From positions 18,032,752 through 18,096,751 of the forward strand of contig OZ316898.1 of assembly GCA_973895155.1 (NCBI GenBank): a stretch of 64,000 nucleotides of DNA, given 5' to 3'. Made by a program: the position numbers and the translations under genes. Shown here one piece after another: positions 673 through 38,159 of this stretch. Source of the stretch: Marsupella aquatica. Taxonomy: Eukaryota > Plantae > Marchantiophyta. Below the pieces are notes generated by a model. The model was not told where the DNA came from. It made no database searches and saw nothing but the letters and a program-made list of their open reading frames with translations. Position 1 is the stretch's first letter, and each line of letters begins with the position of its first letter.

Positions 673-2287
673 CATCATCTTGTCAATGGGATCACGATGC
701 TCAAATCCGAGTGGCCAAAGGTTCTGGCCGAGGCGAATAGGGATGACAGGTTAGCCAAGGAATGACAAAGTAATGGGGTAGCCAAGGCAAGGTGAGACAC
801 GTTTCATTGGGGTTGGATACCGCGCATAATGTCCAGTTATGGCAATACAAGCATAGGAGTGTGTACATCCCAAAGTCTCTAAGATTAGAGGTTCTACAAA
901 AGTACCACGACTCGCCCTTGGGAGGGCATGGCGGACAAGCTGCTACATATTGCAGCATGTCACGAGATGTGTATTGGCCAAACATGAAGCAATCAGTTCT
1001 TCGCCATGTGCAAAGTTATTACTCGTGCCAAAAGAACCGAACGGTCTAAAGGGCAAAAAGAGGACTTTTGCAACCCTTACCAGTAGTTGCGGCTCCATGG
1101 GAGTCCATCTCGTCCATGGACTTCATTGTGGGGTTACCTGATTCCCATGATAATAACTCCATCTTAACAATCGTGGATCATTTTTCCAAGATGACGTATT
1201 TTTTGTCGACTACAAAAATGGTTTTGGCCCGAGAGGTTGCCGGTCTAGTTTTTGACAATGTCTTCTGACAATTGGGATTGTCGTACGTTGCATATCCTGT
1301 CCAACTATGATACCAAGTTCACGTGCCATTTCTGGAAGTTGTTGTTTTGATTATCCAGAACATACCTTACTAGGGGATCAACGTATCATCATGAGACGGA
1401 TCGATGGCCAAATGGAATGGGTGAATGATATTATGGAGGACTACTTGCATCACTTTGTGACGGCCAATCAAAAGGAAAGGGCAAAGCACTTAACAATGGT
1501 CAAGTTTAGGTATAACTCGACCAAGCATTCAACGATGAGGTTTGTGACGTTTGTTTTGGCCATAGGGAGGATGCCAAGGGCGCCCTCCTAGTTCATAAAT
1601 CCGGAAGCTTGGTGGACAAAAAGCAAGGTTCTTTCTGCGAATAATTTTATTTGAGAGCGACACCTAGTTGTGGAAGCAGCTACCAAGGGTATGACCCTTG
1701 GCCAAAGTTGGTACAAGGAGCAAGGGGATAAACATTAACGCCAGGTAAGTTTTAAATTTGAAGTATCAAGGGAAGAGAAAGAAATCTTATATAACAACTT
1801 TGAGACGTATTAGTAAATCGGTAAGCTTTGAAATTGGGGAGAGCGTTTGGTTGCAATTGAGGCCTGAGTAATACCACGGGAACATAAGTACGAAGCTGGC
1901 TCCTAGATATGCGGGGCCCTATTGCATCATACGATGAGCCCACAAGGATAATCTGTTTTTGGTGGTGTTGGAGGCACCCAAGGAAATGGGCATAGGCAAA
2001 AGTTTCCATGTTAGCCAACTTAAGAAATTTGTCAAGACAATGATCCCACCCGGGATCAGGTCTTGCATCCGGACACCATGCTGGTGGAGGACGCTGAGGA
2101 GTTTGAAGTGGAGGCAATTCTGGACCACCGTTACAAACACAAGTTAGGAAGGCAAATCTTAGAGTATTTGGTGAAGTGGGTTGGCTATGATCAGGCCGAG
2201 AGTTCTTGGGAACCGGAAGAAAATTTGGGCAATGCCCTAGAGATCCTTGGAAACTATCGTAAGCAAAGCGGCCCACCGCCATTGTGA
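673..2287 (+). mobile_element. Degenerate Ty3/gypsy (chromovirus) pol 3' end: integrase plus chromodomain
   Basis: Frameshifted pieces: HHCC region (HDSPLGGHGG..YWPNM..SCQ, 792-1049), rve core (PWESISSMDFIVGLP...VDHFSKM, 1068-1268; DGQMEWVN, 1307-1591), FHVSQLK (1959-2147), chromodomain EEFEVEAILDHR...EYLVKWVGYDQAESSWEPEENL (2063-2287). Confidence 0.95.
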
Positions 2288-2710
2288 ACTAGTACACGCA
2301 ACTGTAGCTACCTTTGTGAGTTGTATCTTAGTTTCACTCCTCTCGGCCTCTTGAGAATAAAGTTGGATTGCGTGGGTGCTAGAGGTTGTTAGGCGGCCGA
2401 TTTGTATTTTGCGAGTGAAATTTGATGGTGCTCGCCTCACATCTGTGGGCGGGCCGGTTTGAACTAAAGGGGAGTACCCCATGGGGAGAACAATGGGTTC
2501 GACAAGTCTGGAGTTAGCTTACCCATTTGGATTGGCATCCTACTTGGATAAGTGGGATAGGTTGGAATTTCCTAAGTCTGGAATGCGCATACCAACCTAG
2601 TTTGCATCAGCCTTATGGGCAAATCATTTGTTACCTCATAAATTTTTAAGACCTAAAGTGGTCTAGGCTGCTGGAACGTTTACTTAGGTCCCACAAACAT
2701 GACCATTTTT

Positions 2711-2719
2711 AAGGGGGGG
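2711..2719 (+). promoter_or_regulatory. Polypurine tract of the chromovirus
   Basis: AAGGGGGGG just upstream of the 3' LTR and downstream of integrase. Confidence 0.75.
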
Positions 2720-2723
2720 TGCA

Positions 2724-4167
2724 AGTCGCGGAACACAACTACCTTAACACTTAGCTCCGGCGTTGCTGACTTTGACGTCGAGCTCCCTTATGGTATAGGC
2801 CATCCGGGGAGACTTGTGGGCAATGGGACGTGGCGCTGGCTAGTGTCATGCAATTAGGACTTAGACTAGCTGAGGGTTGGTCGGGTCAAGGGGAAAAGGG
2901 TCGGGCTCATGGATGATCCTCCAGACCCCCGGACGTACTTTGAGTTCTGAGGGCTTGACTGAGAGCTCATCTTGGGCCCAAGGCCAATGGAGTTGAAGCC
3001 ATGGGCAACGGACGCTTGGGGCACAAGTTATGGCCCGATCCGGGTTTGGCCGATCAAGGGCCCTAAGCGGTGAAGAGATCTGAGGGCCTAGGCATGAGCA
3101 CTGGGTTGGCCCGATTGCAACGGGCTAAGGCACTCCGCTTGCGGACGCCTAACTAGGAAGTTATGAGCATTGCCAATTAGTGGTGCGCCGAGAGGGTCCA
3201 AGTTGGGGGCCAAAAGTTTGGGGACCAAAGTTGGTCCGGGGGTGGCAGGTCTCCAGAAACATATATAAGGGGAGTGGTGTCTCCCTGGGGGCTAAGGGCG
3301 AGCCGAAGTCGTGAGCCGCGGCGATCGCGACACTAAAGGAAAACATCAAACAAAAATGACGATAACTTCCCAACGAGAAGTCCGTTGGGGGACTTCTTGG
3401 GTGCATTGGAAAGATCTCAAGGAGGGCTACATCCTCCTGATCTCAGCTGGGTCTGGAGGCACTATAGGTTCTCAAGGTTTGTAGGTGCTATCTCACCCGC
3501 TTGCCAAATCATGCCGAAACAACAGCCAAGCCGCGTTCAGTCTCTCAAGGGAGCTGGCATTGGGGAGGCAAGGCCAAGTAGGCATGGAGGTTGAGTTCCA
3601 AGGGCACTTGGCCCCTAGACCATGAGTGAGGCAAGAACCGAGAGTTGGTTGCTAAAGTCGGGGCCATTCTGGTCCCGACGTGTAGGGACAAGCTTGGGGC
3701 AAGCTTTAGGACAAGCTACGCTATTTGGGCCATGTGCATGTCTTGGGAGCAGGGCGGTCAGTTGGTGATGGATAGGTACGAGGAGGAACCCGGGCTGCGC
3801 CCTAGGAAGGAGCTGTTCTGGACAAACAGTGGGCGTCAAATCTGGCTCCGACTTATGGCATCGGGAGGCTAGGACCTATCGCTGACCTACTTACCAATGT
3901 TTGTTGAGCTTGAGTTAGGATGCTAGACTTGGGAGATCTAGATCCTGAAGGGTTACTTAAATCGAGACGTTGGGTTGCTTGTGTAGACAGTGAGGACCGT
4001 TGAGTAGCGGTCGTGGTAGAGCCCGGCAAGTGTAGCTTCATATGGGAGGGGCCGCTGGTGGTGCAAGGGGCACTAAGTTGCTTGCTTGTGGTATTCCATG
4101 GAGGCTTCGGGCACTTAGGCGTGGGTGCTGGGATTGGTGAGGGCGTTGGGTGGCAAGGTCCACCACT
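2724..4167 (+). mobile_element. 3' LTR (~1.44 kb) of the chromovirus
   Basis: Follows the PPT; colinear along its length with the reverse complement of 9337-10794; TATA-like acatatataagg near 3260; shared ends AGT...ACT. Confidence 0.9.
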
Positions 4168-9127: not shown

Positions 9128-10890
9128 CGGGGGCCTCAATCCAAGGGTTGTCCCATATCACGCTTGAAGTTTTGGGAGAATAAACACCCTAAAAGTTAAG
9201 TCAATAAAGGTTTTTTTAGGAATTTTTTACCCCTAACTTAATGGAATATTCCAAGAATATTCCCATATTTGATTAAAAAACCCTATGATTCTTATAATTC
9301 TTAAAATTGGATTAAAATAACCCTAATGTTCTTCAAAGTGGTGGACCTTGGTACCCAGCGCCCTCATTGATCCCGACACGCACGCTGAAGTGCCCTTGGT
9401 GCTCGAACGCCTCCACGAAATACCTCGAGCAAGCAACCTAATGCCCCCTTGCACTACCAGTGGCCCCTCCCATGCGAAGCCGCACTTGCTCTCTAGCACG
9501 ACCGCTACTCAACGGTCCTCACAGTCTGCACAAGCAACCAAGCACCTCAATAAGTAACCCTTCAGGATCTAGAACTCCCAAGTCTAGTATCCTAACTCAA
9601 GCTCAATAGACGTTGGTAAATAGGTCAGTGATAGGTCCTCCCGATGCCATAAGCTAGAACCAGAACCCACACCCACTGTTTGTCCAGAACAGCTCCTTCC
9701 TTGGGTGCGGCCCGGGTTCCCCCTCGTACCTATCCATCACCTACTGACCGCCCTCACCCCAGGATATGCTCATGGCCCAAATAGCGTAGCTTATCCTAAA
9801 GCTTGTCCCAAGCTTGTCTCAACACGCCGGGACCAAAATGATCCCGACTCTAGCAACCAACTCCCGGTTCACTCCACTGATGGTCTAGGGGCCAAGCACC
9901 CTGGGAACTCAACCTCCACGCCTACTTGGCCTTGCCTCCCAAACGCAAGCTCCCTTAGGAGACTGAACGCGGCTTGGTTGCTGTTTCAGCAGGATTTGGC
10001 AAGCGGGCGAGCTAACACTCGCAAACCTCGAGAACCCCTGACATCCCCAGACCCAGTTGAGATCAGGAGGACGTAGCCCTCTTTGAGAGATTTCTAACGC
10101 ACCCAAGAAGTCCTCCAACGGACTTCCCGTTGGGAAGTTATCGCCGGTTCCGTTTGACGCTTTCCCTTAGTGTCGCGACCACCGCGACTCATGATTTCGG
10201 CTCGCCCTTAGCCCCCAGGGTGACACCACTCCCCTCATATATGCTTCTGGAGACCTGCCACCCCTAGACCAGCTTTGGTCCCTAAACGTTGGGCCTCCAA
10301 CCCAGATCCTATCGCGCATATTGGGAGCGCCACCAACTAGCAACGCCCATAACTTTCTTGTTAGGCATCTGCAAACGGAGTGCTTTAGCCCGTTGTGATC
10401 GGGCTGACCCAGTGCTCATGCCTAGGCCCTCAGGTCTCATCGTTGCGCGGGGTCCCCGATCGGCCAAACCCGGATATCAACTCCATTGACCTTGGGCCCA
10501 AGAGGAGCTCACACTCAAGCCCTCAGAACTCAAAGTCCGTCTGAGGGTCTCGACGGTCGACCTTGAGCCAGGCCCCTTTTCCCCCTTGACCCGACCAGCT
10601 CTCAGCTAGCCTAAGTCCTTAGTGTGTGTCACCCGCTTGGCTCCTTGCCTTCGCTAGTGCCACGTCTCATTGCCCACAAGTCTCCTCATCTAAGTCCTCC
10701 TCGGATGGCCTTTCCGGGCCTGGACCATAAGGGAGCTTGGCATCGGAGTCAGCGACGCCGGACCTAAGTGTTAAGGTAGTCGAGTTCCGCAACTTTCAAC
10801 AAAAATTTAAAAGTATTTCACTAAACCCAATAAAAAACCCTATACTTATTCGCATATGATGGGTCGAAAGAAAATAAGTGAGGACACCGA
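9128..10890 (+). repeat. ~300-bp dispersed repeat (family A), split by the solo LTR
   Basis: 9128-9336 plus 10800-10890 rejoin to match uninterrupted copies at ~48585-48890 (-) and ~60405-60655 (+). Confidence 0.85.
9337..10794 (-). mobile_element. Solo LTR (1458 bp), same chromovirus family, TTCAA target-site duplication
   Basis: Reverse complement of 2724-4167; TTCAA at 9332-9336 and 10795-10799; no internal coding sequence. Confidence 0.9.
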
Positions 10891-12215: not shown

Positions 12216-13285
12216 GTGAGTACCTTGCCCCTCTTGAATGAGTGTGACGAGTACTGTAAAAAGGAATGTGGGCAGACTGATTGTGGGTTTTCTGGGCCAT
12301 CATGTTCCGTAAAAAGGTAATTTTGATGATGTGTAAAGCTCAAGCTTCCATGAAGAAGAACTCGGAAGCCGGAACAATCGAATACAGTCGAACCCATCGC
12401 CCCTCATCCCCGGCCAGCATTTATTAGTGACACATTGATGTACCCTCCTCTCGCCCCCCAACATTTAATGTCCGTTTCACTCAAGAAGCTGGCAACGTCC
12501 GTTTGAGTTTTTTGTTCATCATTTTGAGCCGTGTCTTTGATTGCTGTGTTCAGAATCACTGTTCACAACCACTGCTATTGCCCCCACCTTCATAGAATTT
12601 TACATTGTGTTCTAATGTTCTGACTGGCAGGGGCTGTGAGAAGCAGCAGAAGGGAGGCAAGGAGTTGACCAGGGGAGTGATAGAGGAAGAAGAAGGGGTA
12701 AGAAAGAGACTCTCTTTTCCTTGACTGTATGGGTTTTAGGATGGCAGGGCCTCTCTTCCACTCTAGCACGGATAAAATTTGCTTTGGGGGAGAGACACTG
12801 AGATCTCTGCGGTGATCGTTCTGTCAGTAATGTTTAGGGTAATAGAGCACCCTATAACCTGCGCGGTGGGATCCAGCAGAGCCGAGAAATACTGGGCTTG
12901 GCAGCATCAAGCTCTTTTTCGAGAATGATGTCCAATTGGACTCTGCTCCAATTGCAGAATTACTGACCTATTTGAGCTGGGCAAGGGACAATAGCCTTTA
13001 GGTTTAGTACTGTAGATCTCCAAGGAGAATCCAAAGAGGTGGGCAAATTGGACGATTGCAGAAGGGCTGAGCAAGGAGAGTAAAAACAGCAAATTTCGGT
13101 GTTTAGTAGATCTGCAGAAAGAGTGGGTCAGGTGATTTGGTTTCAGAGTCCCAGTTGCAGAACTGCTGACGAAGACTCAAGGAGAAGAGAAGGAGCAAAC
13201 TTGTACAGTTTAGCGAAAAGATTGTCGGGGACTGGGTGAATTGGGTGGTTCCTTTGGAATTTGGAGGAGGAGGAGAGAGACAGAG

Positions 13286-15335
13286 ATGGCCGACTACCAT
13301 TTTGTGTACAAGGATGTGGAGGGGACGAGTACACAGTGGGATGATATTCAGAGGAAATTGGGGAACAAACCGGCCAAGCCGGCCCCCTTCAAGCCTCCTG
13401 CTTGGGAGGCTGCTGAGGACGAGGAGTCGAAGGTGAAGAACAAAGATTGGCTGAGAAGCAAGAACGCGGAGGAACTGGAGGAGCTTGCGGATGATCCAGA
13501 GCTGGACGACGATCGTTTCCTCGAAGAATATCGGTGAGTGTGGGGTTCGATTTTAGGGTTTGCAAATCAGTTGCGGAGTTGAAATGCCCACCAGATTGAA
13601 CACAACGGTCTCTGATCGAGTATGAAAATCGCATATCGTGGGAGCTTTCTTCCACCTCTTGTCGCCAGTAATTGGATGCCGAAATTTGGTATGCAGTGTA
13701 CTTTAGCATAGAATGCAAATGTTCAGCTGAATAAATGCAGATGCCAGCTACACTTTGTCTCCATTGTAGCCAGCAGTAGTTCGAATCCTTGAGATCAGAG
13801 GTAGCGTTCTTTTGCCGTTGAAATGCCAAGAACTGTTATACTTTGGTGCGGTTTGCTGCGTTAGAGCGTTGTTGATCCACATTGTTTTGGTTAGTGAATG
13901 CATGGTTTTCAACTTTGTAGTCCCGGGGACGCTTTCCGGAATGGTCCATGATCTCTCCCTATGTCCCCGGGACAAGGTCCGAGTTGGCAAGGCGATACAA
14001 CGCTGTCCGTATCCTCTTGGTAACTTGATTGTTAATAAGCGAGTCAGAATCATGGCTCTTGCTTTCTTGCTTCCGTCTATTATCTGGTTGTCGATGATAT
14101 GCTATTGGTCTCTGGCTTCAGGGAGTCCCTGTTTCATTTTCTGTTGGGACCAGTAGGTTTCGGAATCAGGTCATTCTTTCTTGCATCATTGAAATACCAT
14201 ATCCAGAGAAGGGAAGGTATATGCAAGCTTGATGGTGATTGACGTTTATTTTCCTTTCTCAGGAAGAAGCGAATAGCTGAGCTGGCTAGTAAAGCGAGGA
14301 AAGCCCGCTTTGGATCCGTTCTACCGATCACTGGAGCAGATTTCATCAGGGAGGTGTCCCAGGCTCCTTCTGATGTATGGGTTGTGGTCCACCTCTACAA
14401 AGATGGGTTAGTTCTATTTGACTTGTTGTAATTTTCTCCAGCTCACTTTGAGACCAAGTGGTGAAAATTATGTGAGGAGATGAGCTTGTTTATCTTTCTT
14501 CTTTAGTGCTTCAAGTTCAACTGTCATCCCAATTTACGTCAGAACGGTTGTGTTTATAGTAGGAAGAGTATTATGATTATTGCTACCTTTCAACATTCGA
14601 AAGTCAATTTATCCGACTCTTTATTGGGATTTTGTCGTCCCTCATTATGTCAAAAAGAATTTGATGCGAAGAAATTTGTCCTTTTGGTGGCAGGAATTCT
14701 TCTTCTGAACTGCTGGGCCAATGCTTTGACGATCTAGCTGCCAAATACTCAGGAACAAAGTTTGTAAAAATTGTTTCCACGGATTGTATCAAAGACTACC
14801 CAGATTTCAACTTACCAACAGTACTTATCTACAACGACACCAATGTCAAAGCCTCACTGGTTGGTCTTCATCACTTTGGAGGTCGAAAGTGTACGCCAGA
14901 AGGTTGGTATTGTTTTTCCCAGTACTGTGAGTAAGTAGGAAGTTGGAAAACTTTTACACTTGTTAATGCCGTTGTTGTAAGTGCATTAGTGTACGAATAA
15001 TCAAGAACGAAAACCGGTCAGTTTGTGTTCAGTTCAAGGATTTAATTAGAGGCCTTCTAGAACTTTAGAGGATCTTTTGCCTATTAATTTTAAGCTCGGC
15101 GATGATTACTTGACCTAGGAGTTGTTGGTCCGATAATTTATGGGTCTGAAATAATCTTTGAGTTGTTGCAGATGTGGCCTTCAAATTGTGCCAGATAGGA
15201 CCTGTTCTCACAGGCCCGGGAGATGATGGAGATGGTTCCCAGGAGACAATCAAACAGAAAGTGCAAAGAGACTACATAGAAAAGCTGGTTACTAAGCATG
15301 AACAAAGCCGGGATGATTCTGAGGAGGATGACTAG
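13286..15335 (+). CDS. PDCL3: Phosducin-like protein, PhLP2 subgroup (PDCL3/VIAF/Plp2-like CCT cofactor), 254 aa
   Basis: Exons 13286-13533, 14263-14406, 14694-14902, 15172-15335, all GT-AG, 765 nt in frame. Motifs MADYHFVYKDVEGTSTQWDDIQRKLGN, FLEEYRKKRIAEL, RFGSV, VWVVVHLYKDG, TKFVKIVSTDCIKDYPDFNLPTVLIY; acidic tail. Confidence 0.95.
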
Positions 15336-16268: not shown

Positions 16269-19200
16269 TCAGATGAGCAGGGGAAACTTCATCCTCCATA
16301 CTGTCGCTTTCACCTTCAGGAGCGCTTTTCTCAGTTTTCTCATGGAGGAACTCTTCCTAACTTTTGCTGTCTCAATCTCTACCTCATTCTTTTTGTCTGT
16401 TGGGTTTCCCGGTTGCTGGCCACATCTTGTTTCCTCAGCTTCAATAATGCTTCTCTCAATCTCCAAAAATCTCCAAACTGACATCTCCCAGTCTGCTTGC
16501 AACACGGGTTGCAAGGATCATTCAACAGGGCCGAGATGTGAATAGAAACATCTGACTAGTATTGAGACAACTGATTCATCCTCATGAGGCATACATATTC
16601 TCACTATGCTATCAGCAGTTCAGAATATTATCCTACTACTGCTCTTATTTTATAGGGAGCACCATCAATGTGAGGGTAATATCATTTGCTTCGGTGACAA
16701 TTTTGTATGGACGTCCCCAACTGATGTATCGAACAGGAGTTCGCTAATTCGGGGAGCAAAAATGGCCTAGTACATGATAAGAAGCTCTTAACACCTGTGT
16801 TCCTATCAACATGGATGACAGGGCACTGATTGATTGCTAATAGCAGTACTGAACAATTCCCTCTGAAATAACCTCTCGTCCCCCAAGATCAATAACCTTC
16901 CCCATCCAGAACGTGCAAGAACTCCGTCAGAGCAAATAATCTCGATGGTCCCATGATGACAACAGCAGTGGCAGCCTGTATCCATGTGGAACCTGGACAA
17001 AATCCATCAGAGCAAACTGTCTCCATGGCTCAACGACGAAAGCAGCAGCGGTAGTCTTCCTCCATCGACGCTAAAAAAATTTCACCAGATCAAAAAAATG
17101 TAATGTACAAACAGATGACCAAAATCTAAGGTCCCTCAAGACCAGCACATCGCCAGTACAAAGCTCTTTGTGTTCCAGGAGAGGCTGTCCATTCAAAAAT
17201 GCCATGGCTCCTGGTGCGACCAGCCGGGCCACCACATACCCCTTCTTTTGCACGCACCGGTCAGCTGGCATATATATGAACTCAGTATGATCTTCTGAGA
17301 GCCCATTTACAAAGATATGAGCTCCCGTGTTTGATCCCAAGCGGTTGACTCCCTCTTTGAGGAAATGGACCGCGCGGCGACTTGGAAATCCGCACATTAT
17401 CTTGTAGGAGCCACTGCCTGCGGCTGGGCTACGGCTTCGTGCCACTCTTGTTCTCAGGAGAGAGCAGTTTCCCGAAGTTTGAATGAAGAATGGTGTAGTA
17501 GTTTGGAATGTTAGCCGCTCCACTCCAGAATACCGCACATGTCGTAACTTGGAAGGACGGTAGTACCTTCTCGACGCGAAACGCTGGTCATCAACAGCCG
17601 AATCGGAGAGGTAGCTCAAAATCCTGATCTTCCCTGGAGTTGCTAATGCCAAGAATGGTGGCCTTTTGACAGTCGGACGCTTTCCTTCCTGTACAGACCT
17701 TTTATCATGAGCAGCAATCCGCAAAATGATGAAGACCCACAACAAACAGATATGTTGGAGTGAATTAGATAGATCTGTTTTGTGATTCGTAGAATATCCA
17801 AGACCGAGGGCCGTTTGAGTTGCGACCTCTGCCTTGGAGGCATGTTGGGGTCGGGGAACAAGTCCACGGCATCTGTTTGCCGAGATGAACCTGGATTTCA
17901 AGCACTTTCTCTTAGAGCGATTGCTATACCATTCTATCCTACTCCTTAACTTGGCCAAAGTCCATAAAGAACACAAATGAAACGCTTCCTCGGCTGGTCC
18001 ATTCCCAGACCTTTTCTTTTGCCCAGTGAAGTCACGCAGCCAGGACAAGCAAACACTGTTCTGGTTCCTTACTAGTTGCCCATCAGGACATTGACCATTC
18101 TCGCATTCTCCGTGGACTTCCAAATTCTCCCCCGGGTTGCTGAATGGGTAATGCTGCTCGATTGTATGAGTTCGAGGAATGCTATCGACGAGGTCTCCAT
18201 CCCTTTTCGTTAAAAATCCAGTGTTAGTACTGACTGAGTCGAACCTTTCCTCTACAACGTGATCAATGCCATCCAGGTCCCCACTGCCTGGTTGTTGTCT
18301 AACTTGTGCCATTCCACAGTCTCTAGGGAACGCTTCAACACCACTTTCAACTACTCTGCAATGTGTGCGTTGTAGCAAACCCCCAACATTGCTGGCTCTT
18401 ACTTGCTTCAATTTGACATCCTGCAGAATCTCCATACCCGTTACATGGTCACGATAGCCTTGGGGGTTCTGATGTTTGCTGCCCGATGAAGCATTCCAAC
18501 TAGCTTCCTCATCGGTGTTAAGAGTCTCAGCATCGCTCTCTGTCACCAAGTAACTAGGCTCTGACAATGTAATTTCGTGATGATGCTGCCAATTTTGAAC
18601 CACAGAGTCTTTTCTCACCACTTGATGAGCTTGATGCTGCCATTGTTGAGCCAAAGAATCTTGCTCACAGTTCTGATATCCAGAGTTTCGGATCTTGCAC
18701 TCTTCCCAGTGACTTTGGCGCCCCACATGAATGTCCCCAAGGTCGACTGACACCCTTCCCCTGTTCTCAAGGTCAAGGGGCTTTGAGGCTTTGAATGCTC
18801 TGGAAAAGGTTTGATGTCTGAAGTCACTGGCTCCAAGAAGCTTCCAACACGCTTGATATTGCTCATGACAAGGATGCCCCTCCTCCCAGTTAACTTCACT
18901 GCCATTATCGCCAGCCTCAAGTACCTTGGGAGTCATGGGATTGACATCTGATGACACTCCCCAACAACCAGTTCTGGATGTCTGGAACTCACTAGCAGTA
19001 GCACAGAGATCTATCGAGCTCGTTTGCAGCCCAACATTTGCCTGAATGGGCACCGTGGTCGGTACAACGACAATGGAGTTATCTTGGGAGGCTCCACAAA
19101 ATCTACATCGAAAGCGATGCCATGCTTCTACAGCTCTGTATGTATCCGAATTGTTGCAATTAGCTTCAAGTGCAAAACTATCTGTTGACGTGCTTTGATG

Positions 19201-22200
19201 CCTTACATCTACGGAACCATGGTCCTCAAAATTTGAATCACCGCCAAACTGTACACCATTGTCAACCCTTTCGCCAAGTTGTGAGGCCCTAACACCGATG
19301 CTATCCCACTTGGTTTGAAGGCCAACATCAAGTGTCCCAAGGGTCGTCAAATTCGTTTGCAGCGTTGCATCTATAGCTCTACCACAATTATGCAATGCAG
19401 GTGGACAGCCAACATCGCCAGATGAATGTTTCAAGTCACTCTGGGATTCTTTATCGTCCCCTGCCCTAACTTTCAAGCTGGTATGCCCAATACTGACGGC
19501 CCCTCCGTCTCTCAGAGATGCGTGCTGCACCGCAGAAGTACCCGAGCACTTCAGTAGAGTTCTATGTTGGCCACACCGCACGCCACCTGAGGTTTTCCGT
19601 TCGAATTGTTCCTTTCTCTCCTCTACTAGACCAACTCTCAAACCTGCTTCATAGTTGACGTCAATAGCCCCTAAATTTGCCAGAACATTTGGATGGCCGA
19701 CGCCCACAGCACCGGTGCGTTTCCAATAACCATTATATGGATTCATAACAGGGCTTGCATCGGTTTCCTTTGAAATCATCATTGAGCTATAGTCATGTGG
19801 TTTAGATGAATACAAATACAGCTGCTCATCATCAGCCTTACAGTCGTTCAAGTTGTGAGGTTTCCTATGAGCGCCTTGGTCGTCCACTTCACCTTGGTGC
19901 CCCACATCATCAGCCTTGTAGTCGTTCAAGTTGTGATGTTTCCTATGAGCTCCTTGGTCGTCTACTTCAACTTGGTGCCCCTCATCTGATGTCCCAAAGT
20001 CTCTCCAACTATCTGAAGCCCCTAAGTCGACCAAGCTGACTTGGTTCCCGGCGTCTATGGTAGGAGGCTTTTTCAATGTAACTTGGAGACCAGCATCTGA
20101 TGCGCCAAATTCTCTCCAATCAATTTGGTGACTGACGTCCAATTGATTTACAGGGCAATTGGTTGCCTCCTTCACCCCATGGTCCTGGAACCTAGTTTGA
20201 TGGGCTGCATTTGTTGAACAATACTCAGCTGGATTTGTTTGCTCAGCGTCATTAAGCCCCCAACCTTTTCCTGTTGTTTGACTTCCAATATCAATGCCTG
20301 CAAGGGCTTTGTATGAAGTTTGCAATCCAATATTAGTAGGACTCCCGTGGCTCGATGAAATGCAACTCTCAGCTTGTACATTTCCCCAGTTGCGCGAGGT
20401 TATCTGATGCCCGTCATCAACATTCCCAGAATCTCGATGTACAATCTGATTTCCAGCATCAATGAATTCCCAGGTTGGCGATGTGATCTGATTTCCACCA
20501 ATTTCCCCACTGTTACGCATTTTGATCTGGTTTGCAGCATCAATGTGCTCCCTGTCCAGCATTGTAACTTCGTCGTTTTGCAAGGTAGCCCAAATCGTGT
20601 CATCAATATCCCCTCCGTCTCGCGAAGATTCTTGGTTCCAAGAATAAGCACCCTCCCAGTTTTGCATTGGTAACTGATTTCCAACATTACCATCCCTCCA
20701 GTCTCTCGAAGCAACCTGATTTCCGCAATAGACAGCTCCACCATCTCCCAAGTCAGTTTGCTGTCCAAGATAAACAGAACCACAACCCTGCTGGGTGCTT
20801 TGGAAACAGACGTCCTCGACCAAACAGTCTCTCAGAGTACTTTCCTCAGAGAGAGTGACAATTCCCAATTCTCTTAAGGCGACTTGAAGTCCTACATCCA
20901 TGCCCCCAAAGTCCTTGGCAAAGGCTTGATGCCCAGAATCACAAGCACAGACGTTCAAGATTAAGGTTTGATGCCCAAAGTCAACTCTCCCAGAGTCCTG
21001 GAGTGCAGTTGGATTACCCATGTCCATTGCTCCTCCGTCCTTTAGTGCTATCTGGAAGCCTGCATCGCAATTCTCATTTCTTGAGGTGGTTTGCTGTCCA
21101 TTATCTGCAGTGCAAGCGGCAGGGTAAGTGAAATGATGGCCTTAGCATCAAGTATGGATCTCATGGGCTACTCCCGACACCAATGTGAAAAGTCTACAAG
21201 AAAAGTGGGAACTAGCTAGCCATACCTTTGACATGGTTTTCCGTTTGACTTCCTCTGTCGACATGCTGAGGGAGCTTTTTCACACGACTACCATCACGGT
21301 CGAAACGATTGCGCTCAACCTGTTAAATGATGCAGGATGAGTGTATAGATTATCTTCATGAAGAGCAAGGTCCAGCGTCTCACAAAAATGCTGAGCTATG
21401 AGATCAAGTGCTAATCATTAAGTATACGATAGAGGTCCTTTTCCAGTTTTCTCTGGAGATAGATCACCCAAACAAACGCGAAAGATGATGGTTCTTTGAA
21501 TTCGTGCCGCCCCTTATAGGGATCCTTTGGCCTCAAGTCTCTCCTATTGTTTTCTTGAGTACGGCATTCACGTTGCAAAACGGCGAGAAATTGAGGAGAA
21601 GGGTAAAGAAAGGACCTGAAGACCAACATCTAAGCATGGAACTTTGAACCCTTGCAGTGAAGGACGCTGGTCAGAGGGAGCATTCTCTTTCACAGACGTG
21701 AAGGATGACAACAAAGTACGCAGAGTGCAGATTTCTTCCTTCAACGTTTTTATCAATTTGTTCCTTGGATCCTGATCCAGAGCTACTGGAGGCGGTATTC
21801 TGCTTGCTGTGGTGGCATATCGCAGTGTATTTATACTTTCTCGAAGGTCCTGAATTTGAACTCCGTGGACCAAAAAATTAGATATTCCAGCCAGAATATT
21901 TCTAGTGTAAAGTCTAATGTTCTATCTATGGAATCTGTAACTTCGAATGTCAAGAAGAAGATCGATAGGCGATTCATTTCTATCGGACTGAATGAAGTGG
22001 AGACAAGGCACAGACGATTCCTGAGGGAAGGTAATTCATTCCGCTGCCCGACCCGTTTGAGTTCAATTCTCTCGTGCCGTTAGAATAAGATTTCAGGAAT
22101 CATATATTAAGAAGATATATATCATCAATTAGCTACAGTGCCTTATTGTAGTGTATTATCCAATGTACCCATGTGATTTTAAGAACAGAACAGGGAAAAA

Positions 22201-25200
22201 TCCATACACAAGAGTTTGATAGTAATTAGATAATTGGCTCCCCAGACGAAGCTTCTTTGCCTTCCACCTAAGCTGCCAAGAAGAACCCGAAGCCAATCCC
22301 AGGGAATATCTAGGGTGGATCAGAGATGATCCAAGCTTTGAAACAGACCTTGATCCTCTACAGGTCTTAATTTTAATCATCAAGATCACGAAAGTACCTT
22401 CTCAGTAGGTGAGATGTTGGCCACCATGAAGGTCCGACTATTGCCTCCAAGTGACTCTTTCAAGAGCCAAGTCAGTACGGAGTTCCGATATGAAACAAAG
22501 CTGCTTTTCGACAGACTCAGAATCACCTGTTGCATAATCCATAGGCGAAGGTGTTTTCGTAAACAAGAAGCATCAAAAATCACCTTACACAACGAATATG
22601 CATGATTGATTCATATTTGGCACAACTTGCTTAGGAAGAGAGGCAAAACACCAATTGAAAGATGGGTGAGAGAAGTCGTCGGTCACGTCCTTTCACATTC
22701 TCATCCTGCTTTGGTTGTGGTCAAATTGACTGACAAGGGGACACGAACATGCGATGCGCCAAACAACTTTGCCATGTACCTCATTCAATTGTGAAAGGGA
22801 CCGGTTGATGCATCTTGATTCTTCCTGAGTTCGTTGACCTGTGACAGCTCCCGAGCAAAGCTTAGGTAGCTTCTCACTCCCTGCCAGTTTCAACAACATA
22901 CGAGGCCATGCAGAGGTGGTTAGCTCGCTTCAATTCGTCACCACTAGAATATAAACAGCCTCTTGACCTGGAAAACAAGTCCTTTACAGCACTGTGATCA
23001 TGCTTACCGGCAAGATCCACCAGGTTGATGTAGCTCACAGAGCTTGGATGGACCCCAAAGAGATCAGGTCCAAGTTTCTACACATTACATTGAGCTCTTA
23101 GATGAATGAAAACATCTTTCCACAGGACTCACGTCATGTCCTTGAAATACGGTCCTTAGTTCCCTACCTAAATCCATTTTGATCTTGGTGCTCTGCAAAT
23201 TAGATGCATAGTTGATGCTCATGACGAACCGTATGCCATCAAGTGTTTCAACAAAGCCCCCCTAAAGTAGAATTGCTCACTTTTGTCAACCTGATAGAGA
23301 ATACTGCATGGCTACGGCTTGACTGCTCGTTCATATCTGTTGCTGCAGTGGTCCGACTTGTAGAACCCTGTTTCATCAGAGTCTCCATATCATACCAGGT
23401 GCACACATCTTTCCACAATAGGCCTTCCACAAAGGGTCCTGTGATTGGATGTTCTCGTATTTTGAGGAAGTTTTGTTTTCTTACAGGGGAAGCTTCCTCT
23501 AAAACTGTTGGAAAAGTTCGATAATGTTTGTGAATTTTCTGTTTATTGAATACAGTATCAAAGGCAGGCTTGGTCTTCGGACTTCTAACTTTGTTCGCGG
23601 CTCCATCGTGAGCTGAGCTGTACTGTGATTTCTCGCGAGGAGACTTCTCTCCATCAGATTTAACTCTGTGGTGCCTTTGAGATGCGTCCAACTGCCGCTG
23701 GAGGGCTGCTTTGTTCAGGAATGAACTAGTGTACGAGTTCTCAGTCAGACTTCCTGCATAGGAGTGCATCACCCTCTCATCTAGTTTGTTGCCAGAACCA
23801 CCATGATACCTCATTTCTGTGTTGCTACCACGAGGACGGACCTTCTCGTTGCTGGTCATTCCACTTGAGTCCAAGAAACTTTGAGGGAGGGATGTTGCCT
23901 TGGACTCTTCCTCCACTTCATCCTCAGCTAAAAGATCTCGAATCTTCTCTTGGTATATCTCCAGATAGCTGACCTAAAACAATATATGCCAGTTTCTGTG
24001 CAATTTTTTAGACTGCAGTGTGAATAACCTCGAAAATCACAAAGCCATTTCAAGACTCAGGTGCGTAGGAGTCAATTCACGCAATACTTGTCATCTGCTT
24101 CCCATCCACGAAAGACCTTAAGCAACTGCTTTTGTTATTCATTTTCGTATGATATTCTTATCAAAAGTACACAACTTCAATAATCCATATATATGAAATA
24201 GTATCTGTCCAATCTCTAAGGAGATACTGCTGACTTGTTTTTCAAAGAGGATTTCTCTGATTCACCAGCCAGGTCTCGTGAACATGTGATGATCGACAAA
24301 GGTAAAGATTAGTGGTTGCAGTAGTACCTGAACAGTGTAGAGAACACCATTGGTGATCTCTTCATTGATCTTTGTCATGAGGTCACTGGCTAATCGAGGG
24401 ATCTGCACAATTGCGTCTGTTGGCATTTCAGATCCGAAGGATTTTCCTTGACACGAAGTAAGTTTCCTCTGATTGTTTGTGTCTCGAATTTAGTCTTAGA
24501 TATGGAGTGAGCAAAACGATGAATATTTCCTAAAATATTCATCTCAATATTCCTAAAAAAATTCAATTTTTTCGGACAGTTTGGGATTAAATCTTAAAGC
24601 TTCCCCGTAGTTCGGACAAGTCCATTTCATGTTAGTTTTTGCTACATCAGCAACGACCCCTTCGGCAGAAAACAATTGAGATATATTTAAGGTGATCAGA
24701 ATTGGAGAAAGATTGGGTATTTCTTCTTAGCTATGCGAAAGTGATTTTGAACTTACAAGACCTCTGCCAGATTTTGTGTTGTCACCCATCATGGTGTAAG
24801 TTTTACCCGATCCAGTTTGTCCATACGCAAGAATCTGTAGAGACGAAATATGGCTGGTGAGATTCGGTTTAGTTTACCTTTGCGTCATCGGTTTACAACA
24901 CGTTTTTTTAATTGAGAACAAATCCATTTTCAGTAAAAGTGAAAAAATTACAGTCCATTCAATGAAGGCTATTTCGCAGTTCACGTGTTACCCAATCGCC
25001 GATCAGGAAGTCATACACTCTAGAGAAGATACAGAGATCTCACTTAAAGGCAGGAAGGTATTCTAAGGGTAATCACAAAAGACATTCAGTGGAAGAAATG
25101 AATCTGAAACAAAAATTCCCCGGTAAATGCAAGTCCTCACTCCGGGCGAAGTCAAACAAGCAAATGCCTAATTTTTTAAGGAAGTAGGTGTCCGAAAAGC

Positions 25201-26350
25201 AGGCATGAAAAATACTGTAGTATTGTAGCCATCCAAAGCACTTTCTATACAAGGAACGCCAAGAGCGCCATACATCCGTTTCTGAGATTCTTCTTTGTGG
25301 GTATCGCTGTGGACTTGCAAGTAGCTATCATCCTGCATGTAGTCCACCTTAAACTCAATAGCCTCAGCCTTATGAGGATGCTCATTTGACATCCCCGTCA
25401 ACTTTTGGTCGAGGTCCCGCACAACAATTGTTTCGCCGATCAAGCATAGTACCTGCAGTGAATGGCATTCCTTAAACGAAGATACTATATTCTAATGGTG
25501 GTAACAATGGTGGTATCCGACATGATCGGAAAGCAAGTTGCAAAATAATGATGTTTATCACCTGCTCTGCTCTGTTTTGTTCTGTTTAATTTGTGAGTAA
25601 AATTTAACCGCACTTTGGTAGGATCATGAACGAAACATGCACACTTCGTACTGTGTAGTAGAATAATCAGGCACTACCAGCCAGCAACCGCATAGTACTA
25701 GAACAAAACTACCTTCGTGGGTGTCAAGTGTTGTGATCAACGGCACGTTTTTAGCTTAAATCCGAGACATTTCAGAGACAGAAATTTTAGCTGTGTTTGA
25801 CGTCCGAGGATACCTGTTTCAGTGGGCACACTTTTTCGGACTCGCTGAACGGTCTCATTCTCACGTAAACCGTCACCTGAACACTCAAAAAACCCTCCTG
25901 AGAATAGAAGCTCCAACAGTGCAAATATTTCACAGCGTCCAAGAACTAAACATCCTACTGTAGATTTCGCACGGGGTAGCTGGCCTAGAAGGTTTCGTAG
26001 ACATACCCTCGACTTCCTGATTAGTCAGATCATCGTGGATCCTGATAGACTCGGAACAAACAATAAAATGTTTCAGCGAAACGGTCTCATAAGAAACCAT
26101 TTTGACTCACTTTATCCTGCTTAGAAGTGCAGGCATTGGCAGTGGAAGCGTTTCTTCCTGTAGGAGATCTAGAGAACTGCGGGCTGCGCACAGAATCAAA
26201 TGTCCTCCCTACACAATCAATCGTCTCCGGAGGTCTATCGAGATGGACCATTAGCTCTGGGTAGAACTCGTCCATACTCCTCGAGCTCAGAGTTAGAGAC
26301 TCTGTTACTTCTCCAATTGGAGACCATCGAAACGCGCTGTTTGTGGCCAT
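16269..26350 (-). CDS. Kinesin-3-like motor protein with FHA domain and long repeat-rich stalk (~2000 aa; last exons uncertain)
   Basis: Phase-consistent GT-AG exons: 26350-26111, 25876-25814 (VYVRMRP), 25452-25216 (DGYNTT), 24834-24757 ([13 protein letters not shown]), 24402-24328, 23973-23281 ([14 protein letters not shown]...REHP..GPFVEGL...SSRSHAVF), 23077-23008 (INLVDLAG), 22880-22780, 22526-22398 ([20 protein letters not shown]), 21849-21616 (TLRYA...[13 protein letters not shown]), 21319-21226, and 21104-~17120 (giant exon ending in the FHA). A probable last exon at ~16490-16269 is unresolved; the start ATG is also tentative. Confidence 0.9.
17125..17375 (-). other. FHA domain of the kinesin
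   Basis: [12 protein letters not shown]...GLSEDHTEF...AFLNGQPL....LCTGDVLVL follows the kinesin-3 FHA pattern (YIKDGxTxVG...xxEHCxF...VNGxxV...LxxGxRI). Confidence 0.8.
19827..19982 (-). repeat. In-frame 78-nt tandem duplication in the kinesin giant exon
   Basis: Units 19827-19904 and 19905-19982 encode D(E/V)GHQ(V/G)[10 protein letters not shown](H/P)HNLND(Y/C)KAD. Confidence 0.95.
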
Positions 26351-28147
26351 ACTCAGTAAAGCACCTGTAACATCAAAGCAAGAGATCAAATTCGTAGCGA
26401 AGAGGTGACGACAAAAAACCCACAGAACATCCATATTCATTAGCGAACTGGTTGTCCACATCAACATCCTAGACAGCGTACTGCCAGTGGTTGATTTTCC
26501 AAAAAACTTGTGTCTTCGAATCGAACTAAGACTAGGAATTATATGTCCACGACAGCTTCAACTGGTTCAGTCGACGAAATCTCGATATAACCGGTACACG
26601 GTACCCACGGCCTGGCAAGCTTGGATACGGTTGCACGACAGCAGTCTACTCAGAGTTCAAATGGCTCTGTTAGACGTTCCCCCTGGATGCAGATCTATGA
26701 ATTCATTTCGACATCAGTTTTTTGGACACCACAATTGTATCATGCTTCACGGTGTCGTCGCATTATTCGTTTGTACTGGCTTGCATGCTCGGGTGGTCCC
26801 CGCCAGCAACGATACTCCAAACATCTGGCTTATCCAGTCACAAATGATGGCAAGCCTATAAATTTGTCAAAGTCAATAAATATCGTACCTCGCGAAATGG
26901 GCATTTTCGGAATCGATGGGTGTTCCAGCTTCGCTCAATAAGCTGGAGGAGGCACATTCACTTGGGATAAGCCCCTGGATTGCCGAGCACGTAGTCGAGC
27001 ATCGAGTGGAAAATACTCTTTCCTCAATCCGAATAGCATTGAGCTCTCTTCAGTCCTGCGTTTCATTCTTCCGAAATTATATCGGAAGACACAACACTGT
27101 TGAGATGAAGTAGCGATGGCGCATCATGGAGGTGGCATCACGTCAAATTGTGTCATGAACGAGCTTTGAGAACTCTGGGTCTTCGCTTTCTCTGACCAGT
27201 GCTCTTCCATATATCCATTTTCAAATACTGCGTTGGAGTTTTTAGATCCAATAATAACAGCCTCTGAAGTTATAACGATATTACTTCTTGCGTATAGAAG
27301 CAGAGGTTGTCGTAGAACCAACCATTCAGCTCTTTCAAGAAGCCGAGGAAAGGCAACGAAATCCTTCACCGACAGATTGGCATCGATAGATAGGAAGACT
27401 GACCGACGTCCAACCAGGCAGACCACGCCATTTTCGGATTCCAGAGGCTTCAAGAGCGAAATCCTTCATCTCTCAGACCTTTCGAGTTGATCGAACGCCC
27501 GCATTCCAAACACTCCTCTCTATCCTCAAAGGAATGAAATCTTCACCTCACAGACAACGTTGTGGGCCGAGAGGCGGATAGACATCCCGCCAACGAGACC
27601 GCGCCTTTGTTGTTTCTCAATAAATGTGGACCGACGTCAGGGACGTGATCGATCGGACCAGACAGATCTCTTCATCAGAACACAATTCACCAGAACGTAC
27701 GAATGATCTAGCCATCTAGCGAAAGAATTGGCAATCGAGCGCGTGACATTGGAGAGGATTGGTTGACGATGCGGGAACCAGCATGATTGAAATGTGACGA
27801 CACGAAACACATGCAAGAGTGAAAGATCAGTCCCCTTCGATCACGAATTGCGTGCCGAGATTTCCGAGAAGCGCACGAGCGGGCGGATGGCAGAGAGATC
27901 ATCATGCTCGCGATGCTGTCGGTCTTTCGTTCTTCATTCCCTTTAGAATCCTGGATTTCGAGGAAGTCGCGGGTCGCAGCGGCCCGAGCAATCTCGATGG
28001 ATCGACTCCACCATCGCTGATGATCTCTGATTCATTAGCGCCCCGCAAGGTTTCAGATTGATACTTTGCTTTACAGTGTCACCCTGTAAGGGAAGACACA
28101 ATGGACGTTTCTTTTCAAGCCATAATTACCAATGCTTTTAAAGTATA

Positions 28148-37319: not shown

Positions 37320-38159
37320 ATGGGACGTCAGTCTGAGAATCGGAGTCTCTTCGATCAATTGCTACCTGTCCTTCTGGTTTTGGTGATAGGAGTACTCCTC
37401 AACAATGAAAGCTCCAACGCCCAGGAGCCTTACAAGGGCGACTATTATCTTTGCTCAAATGAAACGGTGAAGTGCAGCACATTTTCGCTGTACAGGGCTC
37501 AGAAGGACTACACAACCCTGACATCCATAGGAGCACTTTTTAACACCAATTCGACTACTTTGGCTGCTCTCAACGCATTGCCGGCGGACGGGACGTTGAC
37601 GCTTGGGCAGCCCGTTGTCGTCCCTCTGACCTGCGTCTGCTCCAATGGGACAACTTCGGCCAATTTCACTCACATTATAGCGTCTGGGGACAGTTACTTC
37701 AAGCTGAATATGAACGCTTTCGAGTCTTTGAGCACCGTCCCCGCAATCATCAGGGCCAATCCTACATTGAACTCTTCCGATCTCACCATCGGCACGCCGA
37801 TGATCTTCCCTTTGCGTTGCTCATGTCCGAATGCCACCCAGATCAGCGTTGGTGTTAAATCTTTAGTCACATATCCCGTAGTGAATGGGGATTCAATTAG
37901 CCAAATCGCCACTGACTTTGGTGTGTCTACAGAGTCTATCCTCTTCGCCAATGAATTGCAGGGACCTAGCCCGCTGATTTCTACTCAAACTACCCTTCTT
38001 ATACCCATCAGCAGTGCCACGCCAAACTACACAGGTGCTGTCGGTGCTTCTGCTCCTGCTGCTGAAGGACCAACATCTGCATCTGGTCGTCACAGCAATA
38101 GCAAGACGGGCGGGTATGTTGTAATAGCGGTCTGGTTTTTGTTGGCGTTGTCAATTTGA
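37320..38159 (+). CDS. Secreted or membrane-anchored triple-LysM protein (LYK5/LYR-type ectodomain, no kinase), 279 aa
   Basis: ATG 37320; signal peptide (LLPVLLVLVIGVLL); C-x6-C then YRAQ; three LysM modules separated by CVC and CSC; PLRCSCP..Q...GVKSLVTY...GDS...I...FGV...ANEL...TTLLIP; Ser/Ala/Pro linker; hydrophobic tail; several N-glycosylation sequons; intronless. Confidence 0.9.
   Translation: MGRQSENRSLFDQLLPVLLVLVIGVLLNNESSNAQEPYKGDYYLCSNETVKCSTFSLYRAQKDYTTLTSIGALFNTNSTTLAALNALPADGTLTLGQPVVVPLTCVCSNGTTSANFTHIIASGDSYFKLNMNAFESLSTVPAIIRANPTLNSSDLTIGTPMIFPLRCSCPNATQISVGVKSLVTYPVVNGDSISQIATDFGVSTESILFANELQGPSPLISTQTTLLIPISSATPNYTGAVGASAPAAEGPTSASGRHSNSKTGGYVVIAVWFLLALSI

Follow-up and report, generated by a model that had tools for sequence, protein, structure and literature searches.

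Gene structure and motor class

The window, a 64,000-nucleotide stretch of DNA from the leafy liverwort Marsupella aquatica, carries on its minus strand a predicted 12-exon gene for a putative kinesin-3-like motor. The ten upstream exons (21616..26365) encode an N-terminal extension, the kinesin motor domain, and the neck. We located them by tblastn with the annotated Calypogeia fissa protein P0001, with which they are colinear in pieces at 80 to 95% identity; the gene as a whole is colinear with P0001, and neighboring genes are common to both species. The neck exon ends at 21616 with a GT donor, and its last five codons (21630-21616, DVGLQ) open the first unit of a repeat array. Next comes a 94-nt exon (21319-21226) with AG/GT borders, which corresponds to P0001 residues 656-687 and encodes approximately two degenerate repeat units (…DRDGSRV…DRGSQTE…). 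The terminal exon (21104-17071, approximately 4 kb) contains the array, a tail, and a C-terminal domain. These splice junctions, including the one that follows DVGLQ, were proposed in an initial annotation of this DNA, and they agree with the annotated C. fissa protein.

Pfam Kinesin matched 23248-23916 (E = 1e-15), and the best PDB sequence matches of the P0001 motor were KIF1A, KIF13B, and KIF14 (E = 1.6e-73 to 1e-63), with an alignment to KIF13B that runs through the neck. The best class other than kinesin-3 scored 8.5e-51, which puts the top match more than 20 orders of magnitude ahead by E-value. These matches suggest that the motor is kinesin-3-like, a class that reflects the ranking of PDB sequence matches. 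Pfam Kinesin_assoc (PF16183) scored 18.3 bits (E = 0.0027), under its 29.5-bit cutoff. Shen et al. could assign no Physcomitrella kinesin to family 3 (PMC3472504).

The conserved C-terminal domain (17071..17532, with the stop codon at 17071-17073 included) is approximately 150 residues long and possibly FHA-like. Its ESM Atlas features are nearest to FHA clusters (0.92 to 0.93), which we treat as a lead only, and Pfam and PDB sequence searches returned no FHA match. Alignment of the tail to Sphagnum gave 36% identity, with many invariant columns. Like KIF1A, KIF13B, and KIF14, the protein has kinesin-3 motor scores and possibly also a neck-coil-like segment after the motor and an FHA-like domain. 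Unlike them, it has no coiled coil and FHA module directly after the neck, where approximately 1,100 residues, partly repeat and partly non-repeat, are found instead; the FHA-like domain lies at the extreme C terminus, the motor domain contains an insert of approximately 150 residues (in exon 23281-23973), and a search for the cargo-binding domains PH, PX, CAP-Gly, and START found none in the protein.

A 14-residue repeat conserved in liverworts and Sphagnum

We used identity autocorrelation of the translated terminal exon to examine the array, which had been described as approximately 40 units of 14 residues. The period is real: all the example units quoted in that description were found in frame, and the autocorrelation has its maximum at lag 14 (z = 10.5 when the first 760 residues are taken). 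The signal is concentrated in a dense array (19825..21104, exon residues 1-426), delimited by lag-14 score, unit layout, and position frequencies, which holds approximately 30 unit slots and gives z = 12.2 at lag 14, with harmonics at lag 28 (z = 5.9) and lag 42 (z = 6.7). A non-repeat interruption follows (19372..19824, residues 427-577), with z = 2.2 only, and is colinear with C. fissa. Relic units such as DATLQT, DVGLQTK, NVGLQTS, HVGRQS, and NSGYQN occupy 18604..19371 (residues 578-833), where the lag-14 signal is weak (z = 3.2, compared to 6.6 in the C. fissa counterpart). Periodicity is absent from exon residues 834-1343, which include the non-repeat tail (17533..18603), a region delimited also by motif positions and alignment.

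Each unit is built on the core D-hydrophobic-G-x-Q-[T/V/I]. Among 36 in-register units of the window, the consensus is D (50%), x, G (61%), x, Q (72%), and T/V/I (58%), followed later in the unit by a second D (39%), x, G (42%). Hydrophobic or hydrogen-bonding residues alternate at unit positions 14, 2, 4, 6, and 8, as they would in a single strand. Many units lack the core, and a recognizable one is present in 27 units of the terminal exon and 2 units of the upstream exons; the figure of approximately 40 was thus an overcount, and approximately 29 is nearer. The register was said to hold even in units without the motif, but at least nine odd pieces of 5 to 12 residues interrupt it, and residues 427-577 are not repeat. 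At the DNA level, Tandem Repeats Finder shows only one recent, in-frame tandem duplication of 78 nt, or 26 residues (19827..19986, 2.1 copies, 91% matches). This segment is single-copy in C. fissa, leaving a 25-residue gap in the pairwise alignment.

The same core occurs at the same place in the homologous kinesins of C. fissa and of the peat moss Sphagnum. The Sphagnum kinesins share the architecture and have a cleaner core, D-[IV]-G-H-Q-T (D 83%, G 86%, Q 94%, T 77% of units), in which the information is packed into four to five adjacent positions and the remainder varies. Unit number and arrangement differ between lineages, with a 42-residue triple unit re-amplified in Sphagnum, and indels between orthologues are not multiples of 14. 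We found no relative of the array in Pfam, the PDB, or the ESM Atlas, and the Pfam repeat families gave nothing even at E ≤ 10. The region after the neck is a conserved short-motif array without a known relative. Its motif is shared by two lineages of bryophytes, the Sphagnum mosses and the leafy liverworts.

Comparison with C. fissa gave dN/dS values of 0.66 for the array, 0.62 for the rest of the exon, and 0.26 for the C-terminal domain. Identity is 63 to 66% in the giant exon, compared to 80 to 95% in the motor exons. Overall constraint on the array is weak. Within units, Q5 is kept in 24 of 25, G12 in 13 of 14, and D1 in 19 of 21, while positions 7 to 9 change freely (pN/pS above 1); the difference in conservation between the core and the other unit positions is not significant between the two liverworts (P = 0.10). 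G3, Q5, and T6 are each encoded by a mixture of codons (third-position identity 0.34), indicating that the units are old and that the motif has been held by selection rather than by recent copying. In addition, T, V, or I occupies unit position 4 in only 1 of 88 core units from three species, where 16 would be expected (P = 4e-7), a sign of selection and not of drift.

Folded repeat or captured motifs

Our leading, still tentative, explanation is that the array is a series of multivalent strand-type linear motifs, mostly unfolded, each captured by a repeated partner. We infer the disorder, the capture, and the type of partner from several features. Periodicity is confined to the array, and the same core recurs in C. 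fissa and Sphagnum; the information sits in a few adjacent positions, with Q5 kept and positions 7 to 9 free, all of which argues for linear motifs. Because the register breaks and the indels are irregular, beads on a string fit better than a rigid fold. Disorder of the window array is suggested by AlphaFold2, which yielded no confident fold for the array alone (mean pLDDT 25.8, very shallow alignment), and by charge-hydropathy, which places it on the disordered side. Capture as a strand is suggested by the alternation within units.

A less probable but serious alternative is that the array folds by itself and serves as a rigid spacer or rod. The fold would be a beta-rich repeat, either a narrow solenoid or roll of beta-strands or a meander of beta-hairpins, and metal or Ca2+ bound at its D-x-G turns would perhaps stabilize it. 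Each unit has two conserved turn-like D-hydrophobic-G elements and a regular alternation of hydrophobic residues, which a folded repeat would explain. Units of the Sphagnum kinesins contain much Cys, His, Phe, and Trp. Charge-hydropathy puts the main Sphagnum array, which is richer also in Leu, on the folded side, and this counts against the motif array. So does the best AlphaFold2 model of the five made for the Sphagnum array, an all-beta structure with a pTM of 0.38 and pLDDT peaks every 14 residues. However, mean pLDDT for the Sphagnum array was 42.8, four of its five models scored 20 to 26, its alignment was also very shallow, and no residue reached pLDDT 70 in either the window-array or the Sphagnum-array model. 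Foldseek on the Sphagnum-array model returned no match at E ≤ 0.001, and its weak rows were all beta-solenoids. AlphaFold is prone to drawing solenoids for regular repeats. Confident stacked coils of fixed length were not seen in the array, given the low pLDDT, and the register breaks and non-14 indels would disrupt a solenoid.

Short-period beta-solenoid repeats (RTX beta-roll, insect antifreeze proteins, curli CsgA) resemble the array in their short period, in the conservation of Gly, Asp, Gln, and Thr, and in the alternation of hydrophobic residues, in addition to the low-confidence model and weakest-level Foldseek rows noted above. They differ in showing no sequence or confident structural similarity to it, and the register of the liverwort array is irregular and its host a cytoplasmic motor, not a secreted protein. 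If the array does fold alone, it would represent a new class of beta-repeat with a 14-residue period.

Comparison with LC8-binding motifs and remaining explanations

If the motifs are captured, the known type of partner that fits best would be LC8 or an LC8-like paralogue of plants whose -1 pocket differs. Most core positions and the linker fit, and KANK1 provides a precedent for weak sites. Multivalent LC8 clients include yeast Nup159 (5 sites), Drosophila ASCIZ (7 sites), and the L2 linker of human KANK1 (approximately 15 dimers). In the LC8 rule, the Q at position 0 is flanked at -1 and +1 by branched residues of middle size (T/V/I) that are buried, and the phage-display optimum, VSRGTQTE, has a small residue at -2 (PMC6607443). 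The array core agrees with these rules at -4, -3, -2, 0, and +1. Q is present at position 0 in 72 to 94% of units, and +1 is T, V, or I in 21 of 27 window units and 30 of 40 Sphagnum units. Position -4 is D or N in most units (23/27 in the window, 17/21, and 32/40 in Sphagnum), -3 is V, I, F, or L in most Sphagnum units and Ala in 7 of 27 window units, and -2 is Gly, consistent with LC8 flanks that are polar or Asp at -4, large at -3, and without a bulky aromatic at -2. With a motif of 8 residues, a period of 14 leaves a linker of 6 residues, short enough for stacked dimers and within the range of 6 to 9 residues at which ASCIZ linkers give homogeneous LC8 complexes (PMC10046861).

The anchor is where the array departs from this rule, and it counts against the motif array as well. 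Position -1, which is unit position 4, holds H, N, L, Y, C, or Q and almost never T, V, or I, whereas in LC8 complexes the -1 side chain is fully buried, anchor deviations yield non-binders, and LQT and most SQT peptides failed to bind (PMC6607443). KANK1 binds LC8 cooperatively through weak, non-canonical sites and forms a rod, but its named anchors TST, IGC, VNT, VMA, and VGE retain a beta-branched -1 residue (T/I/V). The array also conserves the Gly at -2 and, within the linker, the second D-hydrophobic-G more strongly than LC8 needs, which hints at turns in a folded repeat. Judged by its residues, the array motif resembles the canonical LC8 motif without fully matching it.

Kinesin stalks are almost always coiled coils. 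We regard it as rather doubtful, and somewhat less probable than a self-folding repeat, that approximately 30 canonical LC8/DYNLL dimers zip two kinesin chains into a ladder in place of a coiled-coil stalk, even though bryophytes have flagellated sperm and retained dynein components. We hold in similar doubt the version in which approximately 30 tandem D-hydrophobic-G-x-Q-T strands recruit stacked LC8 or LC8-like dimers, possibly of a bryophyte paralogue whose -1 pocket is altered, that would replace the coiled-coil stalk as the dimerizing, length-setting element. The array shares with LC8 clients a tandem arrangement of strand-type motifs with short, regular linkers, no confident fold when modeled alone, and a microtubule-related host in which pairing two chains would make sense. 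It differs in having, as candidate sites from sequence, approximately twice the sites of any described client, and in having a plant motor as host.

It is improbable, although the substitution data lend it some weight, that the array is a fast-evolving, weakly constrained spacer in which only length, charge, or flexibility matters and the periodicity is mostly a legacy of old duplications. The dN/dS of the array is near that of the rest of the exon and far from that of the C-terminal domain, identity is low in the giant exon, many units have lost the core, core and other positions are not significantly different in conservation, and lineages differ in unit number and arrangement; the dN/dS and the P value of 0.10 also count against the motif array. 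A spacer would not explain why mosses and liverworts have retained the same core of six residues, why D, G, Q, and T are kept while synonymous sites are randomized, why Q5, G12, and D1 persist between liverworts, or why T/V/I is avoided at position 4. It is very improbable that position-6 Thr is phosphorylated and makes the units ligands of the protein's own C-terminal FHA-like domain for autoinhibition or oligomerization, as MDC1 T-Q-x-F repeats are bound by the RNF8 FHA domain: the FHA-like language-model features and the frequent Thr at this position in Sphagnum fit, but window units have Thr there in only 25%, the V/I substitutes cannot be phosphorylated, and sequence searches do not confirm the FHA domain.

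Under the multivalent-motif explanation, the region after the neck would consist of tandem cores of approximately 8 residues separated by spacers of approximately 6 residues, the spacers often bearing the second D-hydrophobic-G. This acidic, largely unfolded segment would occupy the place of the coiled coil and FHA domain of other kinesin-3 motors and act through multivalency. A repeated partner, probably a dimer, would take up each core as a beta-strand; once bound, it would make a stiff rod of the segment, bring two motor chains together, or do both. Capture of a dimeric hub, LC8 for example, would be a novel means of dimerizing and stiffening a motor; with LC8 itself, it would be by far the largest LC8 ladder and would extend the LC8 motif repertoire at -1. 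Whether the units are captured or the array folds alone, the gene encodes an uncharacterized kinesin-3-like motor in land plants. A single canonical-looking motif, VATQT (17812-17826), lies outside the array in the non-repeat tail, where the initial annotation had correctly placed EVATQT at 17812-17829, and C. fissa has VATQT too.

Periodicity and layout of the array

The repeats begin at the end of the neck exon (...DVGLQ at 21616, minus strand, followed by a GT donor), continue in a 94-nt exon after it (21319 to 21226, minus strand), and lie mostly in the terminal exon, which runs on the minus strand from 21104 to the stop codon at 17071 to 17073 and contains 1,343 open codons. We measured periodicity as residue-identity autocorrelation against 500 shuffles. 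At a lag of 14 residues, z was 10.5 over the first 760 residues of the terminal exon, 12.2 over residues 1 to 426 (5.9 at lag 28 and 6.7 at lag 42), and 3.2 over residues 578 to 833; lags 13 and 15 were at or below chance, and no lag-14 periodicity was detected by autocorrelation in residues 834 to 1343. The orthologous segments in Calypogeia fissa were alike (lag-14 z of 10.3 and 6.6), and two Sphagnum arrays gave stronger signals, with z of 11 to 15.5 at lag 14 and higher still, 15 to 21.6, at lag 42. Because lag 42 also exceeds lag 28 in the liverwort array, the three-unit order may be ancestral. In the Sphagnum jensenii DNA, the two arrays are separate (9806 to 10309 and 11342 to 12385 of L002), form a 42-residue super-repeat of three units, and are rich in Cys at unit positions 7 and 11.

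Placed in register, the window array falls into ten blocks, with 36 unit slots in all. The frequencies in the window are D 50%, G 61%, Q 72%, and T/V/I 58% at unit positions 1, 3, 5, and 6, with D 39% at position 10 and G 42% at position 12. The Sphagnum units are more regular at positions 1 to 6 (D 83%, I/V 65%, G 86%, H 54%, Q 94%, and T 77%) and have L 40%, D 37%, F/C 62%, and G 57% at positions 8, 10, 11, and 12. The autocorrelation and the position frequencies together bear out the 14-residue repeat and the consensus proposed in the initial annotation. Its count of about 40 units was too high, since a recognizable core is present in 27 units of the terminal exon plus 2 upstream, and the register, which it described as holding even in units without the motif, is broken between blocks by odd pieces of 5 to 12 residues.

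Age of the units and selection

The window units are old at the DNA level. Their mean pairwise nucleotide identity is 0.36, and third-position identity at identical 4-fold residues is 0.34. Codon usage at the conserved G, Q, and T is mixed; the G at position 3, for example, is encoded by GGA in nine units, GGG in eight, GGT in three, and GGC in two. Given these mixed codons and low third-position identity, the core has been retained while silent sites were randomized. The same core occurs in Sphagnum kinesins of like architecture, in which the motor is 46% identical, the neck is the same, and the C-terminal domain is 32 to 36% identical. The sole recent duplication in the array is an in-frame 78-nt tandem (19827 to 19986; 26 residues, copies 91% identical) that C. 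fissa lacks, indicating that the array is still changing by unit-scale duplication. In Sphagnum, a block of three units (42 residues) has been amplified again, with nucleotide identity of 0.68 at the three-unit lag versus 0.54 at others.

Between the window and C. fissa, Q at position 5 is kept in 24 of 25 units, G at position 12 in 13 of 14, and D at position 1 in 19 of 21, and pN/pS exceeds 1 at positions 7 to 9; the difference in identity between the core and the rest of the unit was not significant (P = 0.10). Constraint on the array as a whole is weak, with dN/dS of 0.66 compared to 0.62 for the whole exon and 0.26 for the C-terminal 150 residues. Two public DNA runs (X3 and X4) contain a second strain or species approximately 97 to 98% identical to the window. 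Among the differences listed for this relative, the only terminal-exon indels are a 9-nt insertion and a 9-nt deletion (17423 and 17749), both in frame; the frame-breaking indels are intronic, as are those of 1 to 3 nt (21131 and 21581 to 21589).

Candidate partner and fold of the array

We favor reading these repeats as a multivalent linear-motif array that would capture a repeated partner, because conservation sits in one short strand-like core, changes in spacing are tolerated, and no confident fold was obtained. The initial annotation had proposed a stalk zippered by LC8; of the known types of partner, LC8 or a paralogue resembling it fits best, as a non-canonical and unproven candidate. 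In the published LC8 motif, an eight-residue strand, position 0 is Q and is flanked at -1 and +1 by mid-sized branched residues that are fully buried; -4 is polar, -3 is large, -2 excludes bulky aromatics, and +2 is preferably P, D, or E. Phage display gave VSRGTQTE as the optimum (PMC6607443). The repeat core agrees with these rules at -4 (D), -2 (G), 0 (Q), and +1 (T/V/I), and also at -3 (V/I), although this residue is often A in the window. The hydrophobic face of the unit (positions 14, 2, 4, and 6) is the one that would enter the LC8 groove, and the 14-residue period leaves a 6-residue linker, which is inside the range of 6 to 9 that gave homogeneous LC8 ladders in ASCIZ (PMC10046861).

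The misfit lies at position -1, which is unit position 4. The residues here are H (8 units), L (6), and N (6) in the window; H (6), L (6), and N (4) in C. fissa; and H (19), C (5), Y (4), N (4), and Q (4) in Sphagnum. Across the three sources, T, V, or I occurs at this position in 1 of 88 units, versus 16 expected from composition (P = 4e-7). In a peptide set from 2019, one LQT peptide and the majority of the SQT peptides were LC8 non-binders (PMC6607443). In KANK1, approximately 15 weak, atypical sites still build an LC8 rod cooperatively; however, its named anchors (TST, IGC, VNT, VMA, and VGE) retain T/I/V at -1 and differ at position 0 instead, the opposite of the pattern in the array. A single canonical-looking VATQT is present at 17812 to 17826, and C. 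fissa has the same. By our own estimate, a protein this large could contain one triplet of this kind by chance. A pattern scan of a metagenome sequence yielded a canonical, green-alga-like LC8 open reading frame of 91 residues (L005, 1419 to 1691, minus strand). Complex prediction with two LC8 copies and two copies of a well-conserved three-unit window fragment (20857 to 20982, minus strand) scored 0.36, 0.01, and 0.01, which counts neither way.

A serious rival to the linear-motif reading is that the array folds by itself into a beta repeat, as suggested by the conserved Gly, the second D-hydrophobic-G, and the abundance of Cys and aromatic residues in the Sphagnum units. The beta-solenoid that the initial annotation had offered as an alternative did not emerge as a confident fold when the array was modeled alone; a weak all-strand model was obtained for Sphagnum only. 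With four-row alignments, AlphaFold2 gave a mean pLDDT of 25.8 for the window array; the best of five models of the main Sphagnum array had 42.8 (pTM 0.38), with pLDDT peaks every 14 residues, and the other four scored 20 to 26. Foldseek with this low-confidence model returned no match at E <= 0.001, and its weak rows were beta-solenoids, which tells of the model rather than the protein. On the charge-hydropathy plot, the window array lies in the disordered region and the Sphagnum array across the boundary in the folded one. Searches for relatives returned no relevant Pfam match to the array, middle region, or C terminus at E up to 10, only the Sphagnum cluster among 1.84 billion representatives searched with HMMER using the array, and no look-alike of the array in the ESM Atlas (best score, 0.76). 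With the Sphagnum array and the C. fissa C terminus as queries, homologue searches that were capped and bounded by a word index and by length recovered nothing besides Sphagnum proteins and the query, and the known taxonomic range of the family reflects the reach of such capped searches.

We consider it less likely that the array is a tolerated spacer and nothing more, because the core is deeply conserved and T/V/I is avoided at unit position 4. Among other ligand types, PIP-box-like Q-x-x-L-x-x-F and gamma-ear-type D-F-G-x-F matches occur in every third Sphagnum unit only and do not cover the conserved core, and a phospho-Thr/FHA ligand was rejected given that T is freely swapped for V and I in the liverwort.

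Gene model and C-terminal domain

The kinesin gene is predicted to have 12 exons on the minus strand and is colinear with the annotated C. fissa protein P0001 over residues 9 to 2027, with identities of 80 to 95% in the motor exons and 66% in the terminal exon. The exon model was predicted from DNA; a search found no RNA run that contains the stretch, and the four public runs compared with it, over 5,901 nt, are DNA contigs without splice joints. Window exons were searched one by one; full-length comparisons refer to the database proteins P0001 and P0006. The best matches of the P0001 motor were KIF1A, KIF13B, and KIF14 (E = 1.6e-73 to 1e-63), and the best match of another class was 8.5e-51. 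C. fissa and Sphagnum jensenii share this giant terminal exon, and in both it ends at the homologous stop. A phosducin-like gene (13241 to 13537, plus strand) and a LysM-domain gene (about 37320 to 38159) flank the kinesin and are also its neighbors in the C. fissa DNA; this conserved order of three genes supports orthology and places the window in a liverwort related to C. fissa.

PDB searches with the C-terminal domain, run with a profile and with each of two sequences, gave chance-level rows only. Its ESM Atlas features are close to FHA clusters (0.92 to 0.93), an assignment not confirmed by Pfam or PDB sequence searches. No other part of the tail is as well conserved as this domain (17074 to 17532, minus strand; approximately 150 residues), which has many invariant columns compared to Sphagnum.

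A 54-nt piece of a kinesin intron (22253 to 22306) has a read-contig depth of 1,283 to 3,352, versus 18 to 70 around it, in three of the four runs (X1, X3, and X4). It sits on separate short contigs that run on into unlike sequence, had no match in Rfam, and is probably part of an organellar or very high-copy sequence. Within the motor domain, a Ser/Lys-rich insert of approximately 150 residues separates a strand from FLKIREHP (exon 23281 to 23973, minus strand); it is conserved in C. fissa, and the insert in the Sphagnum homologue is much shorter here.
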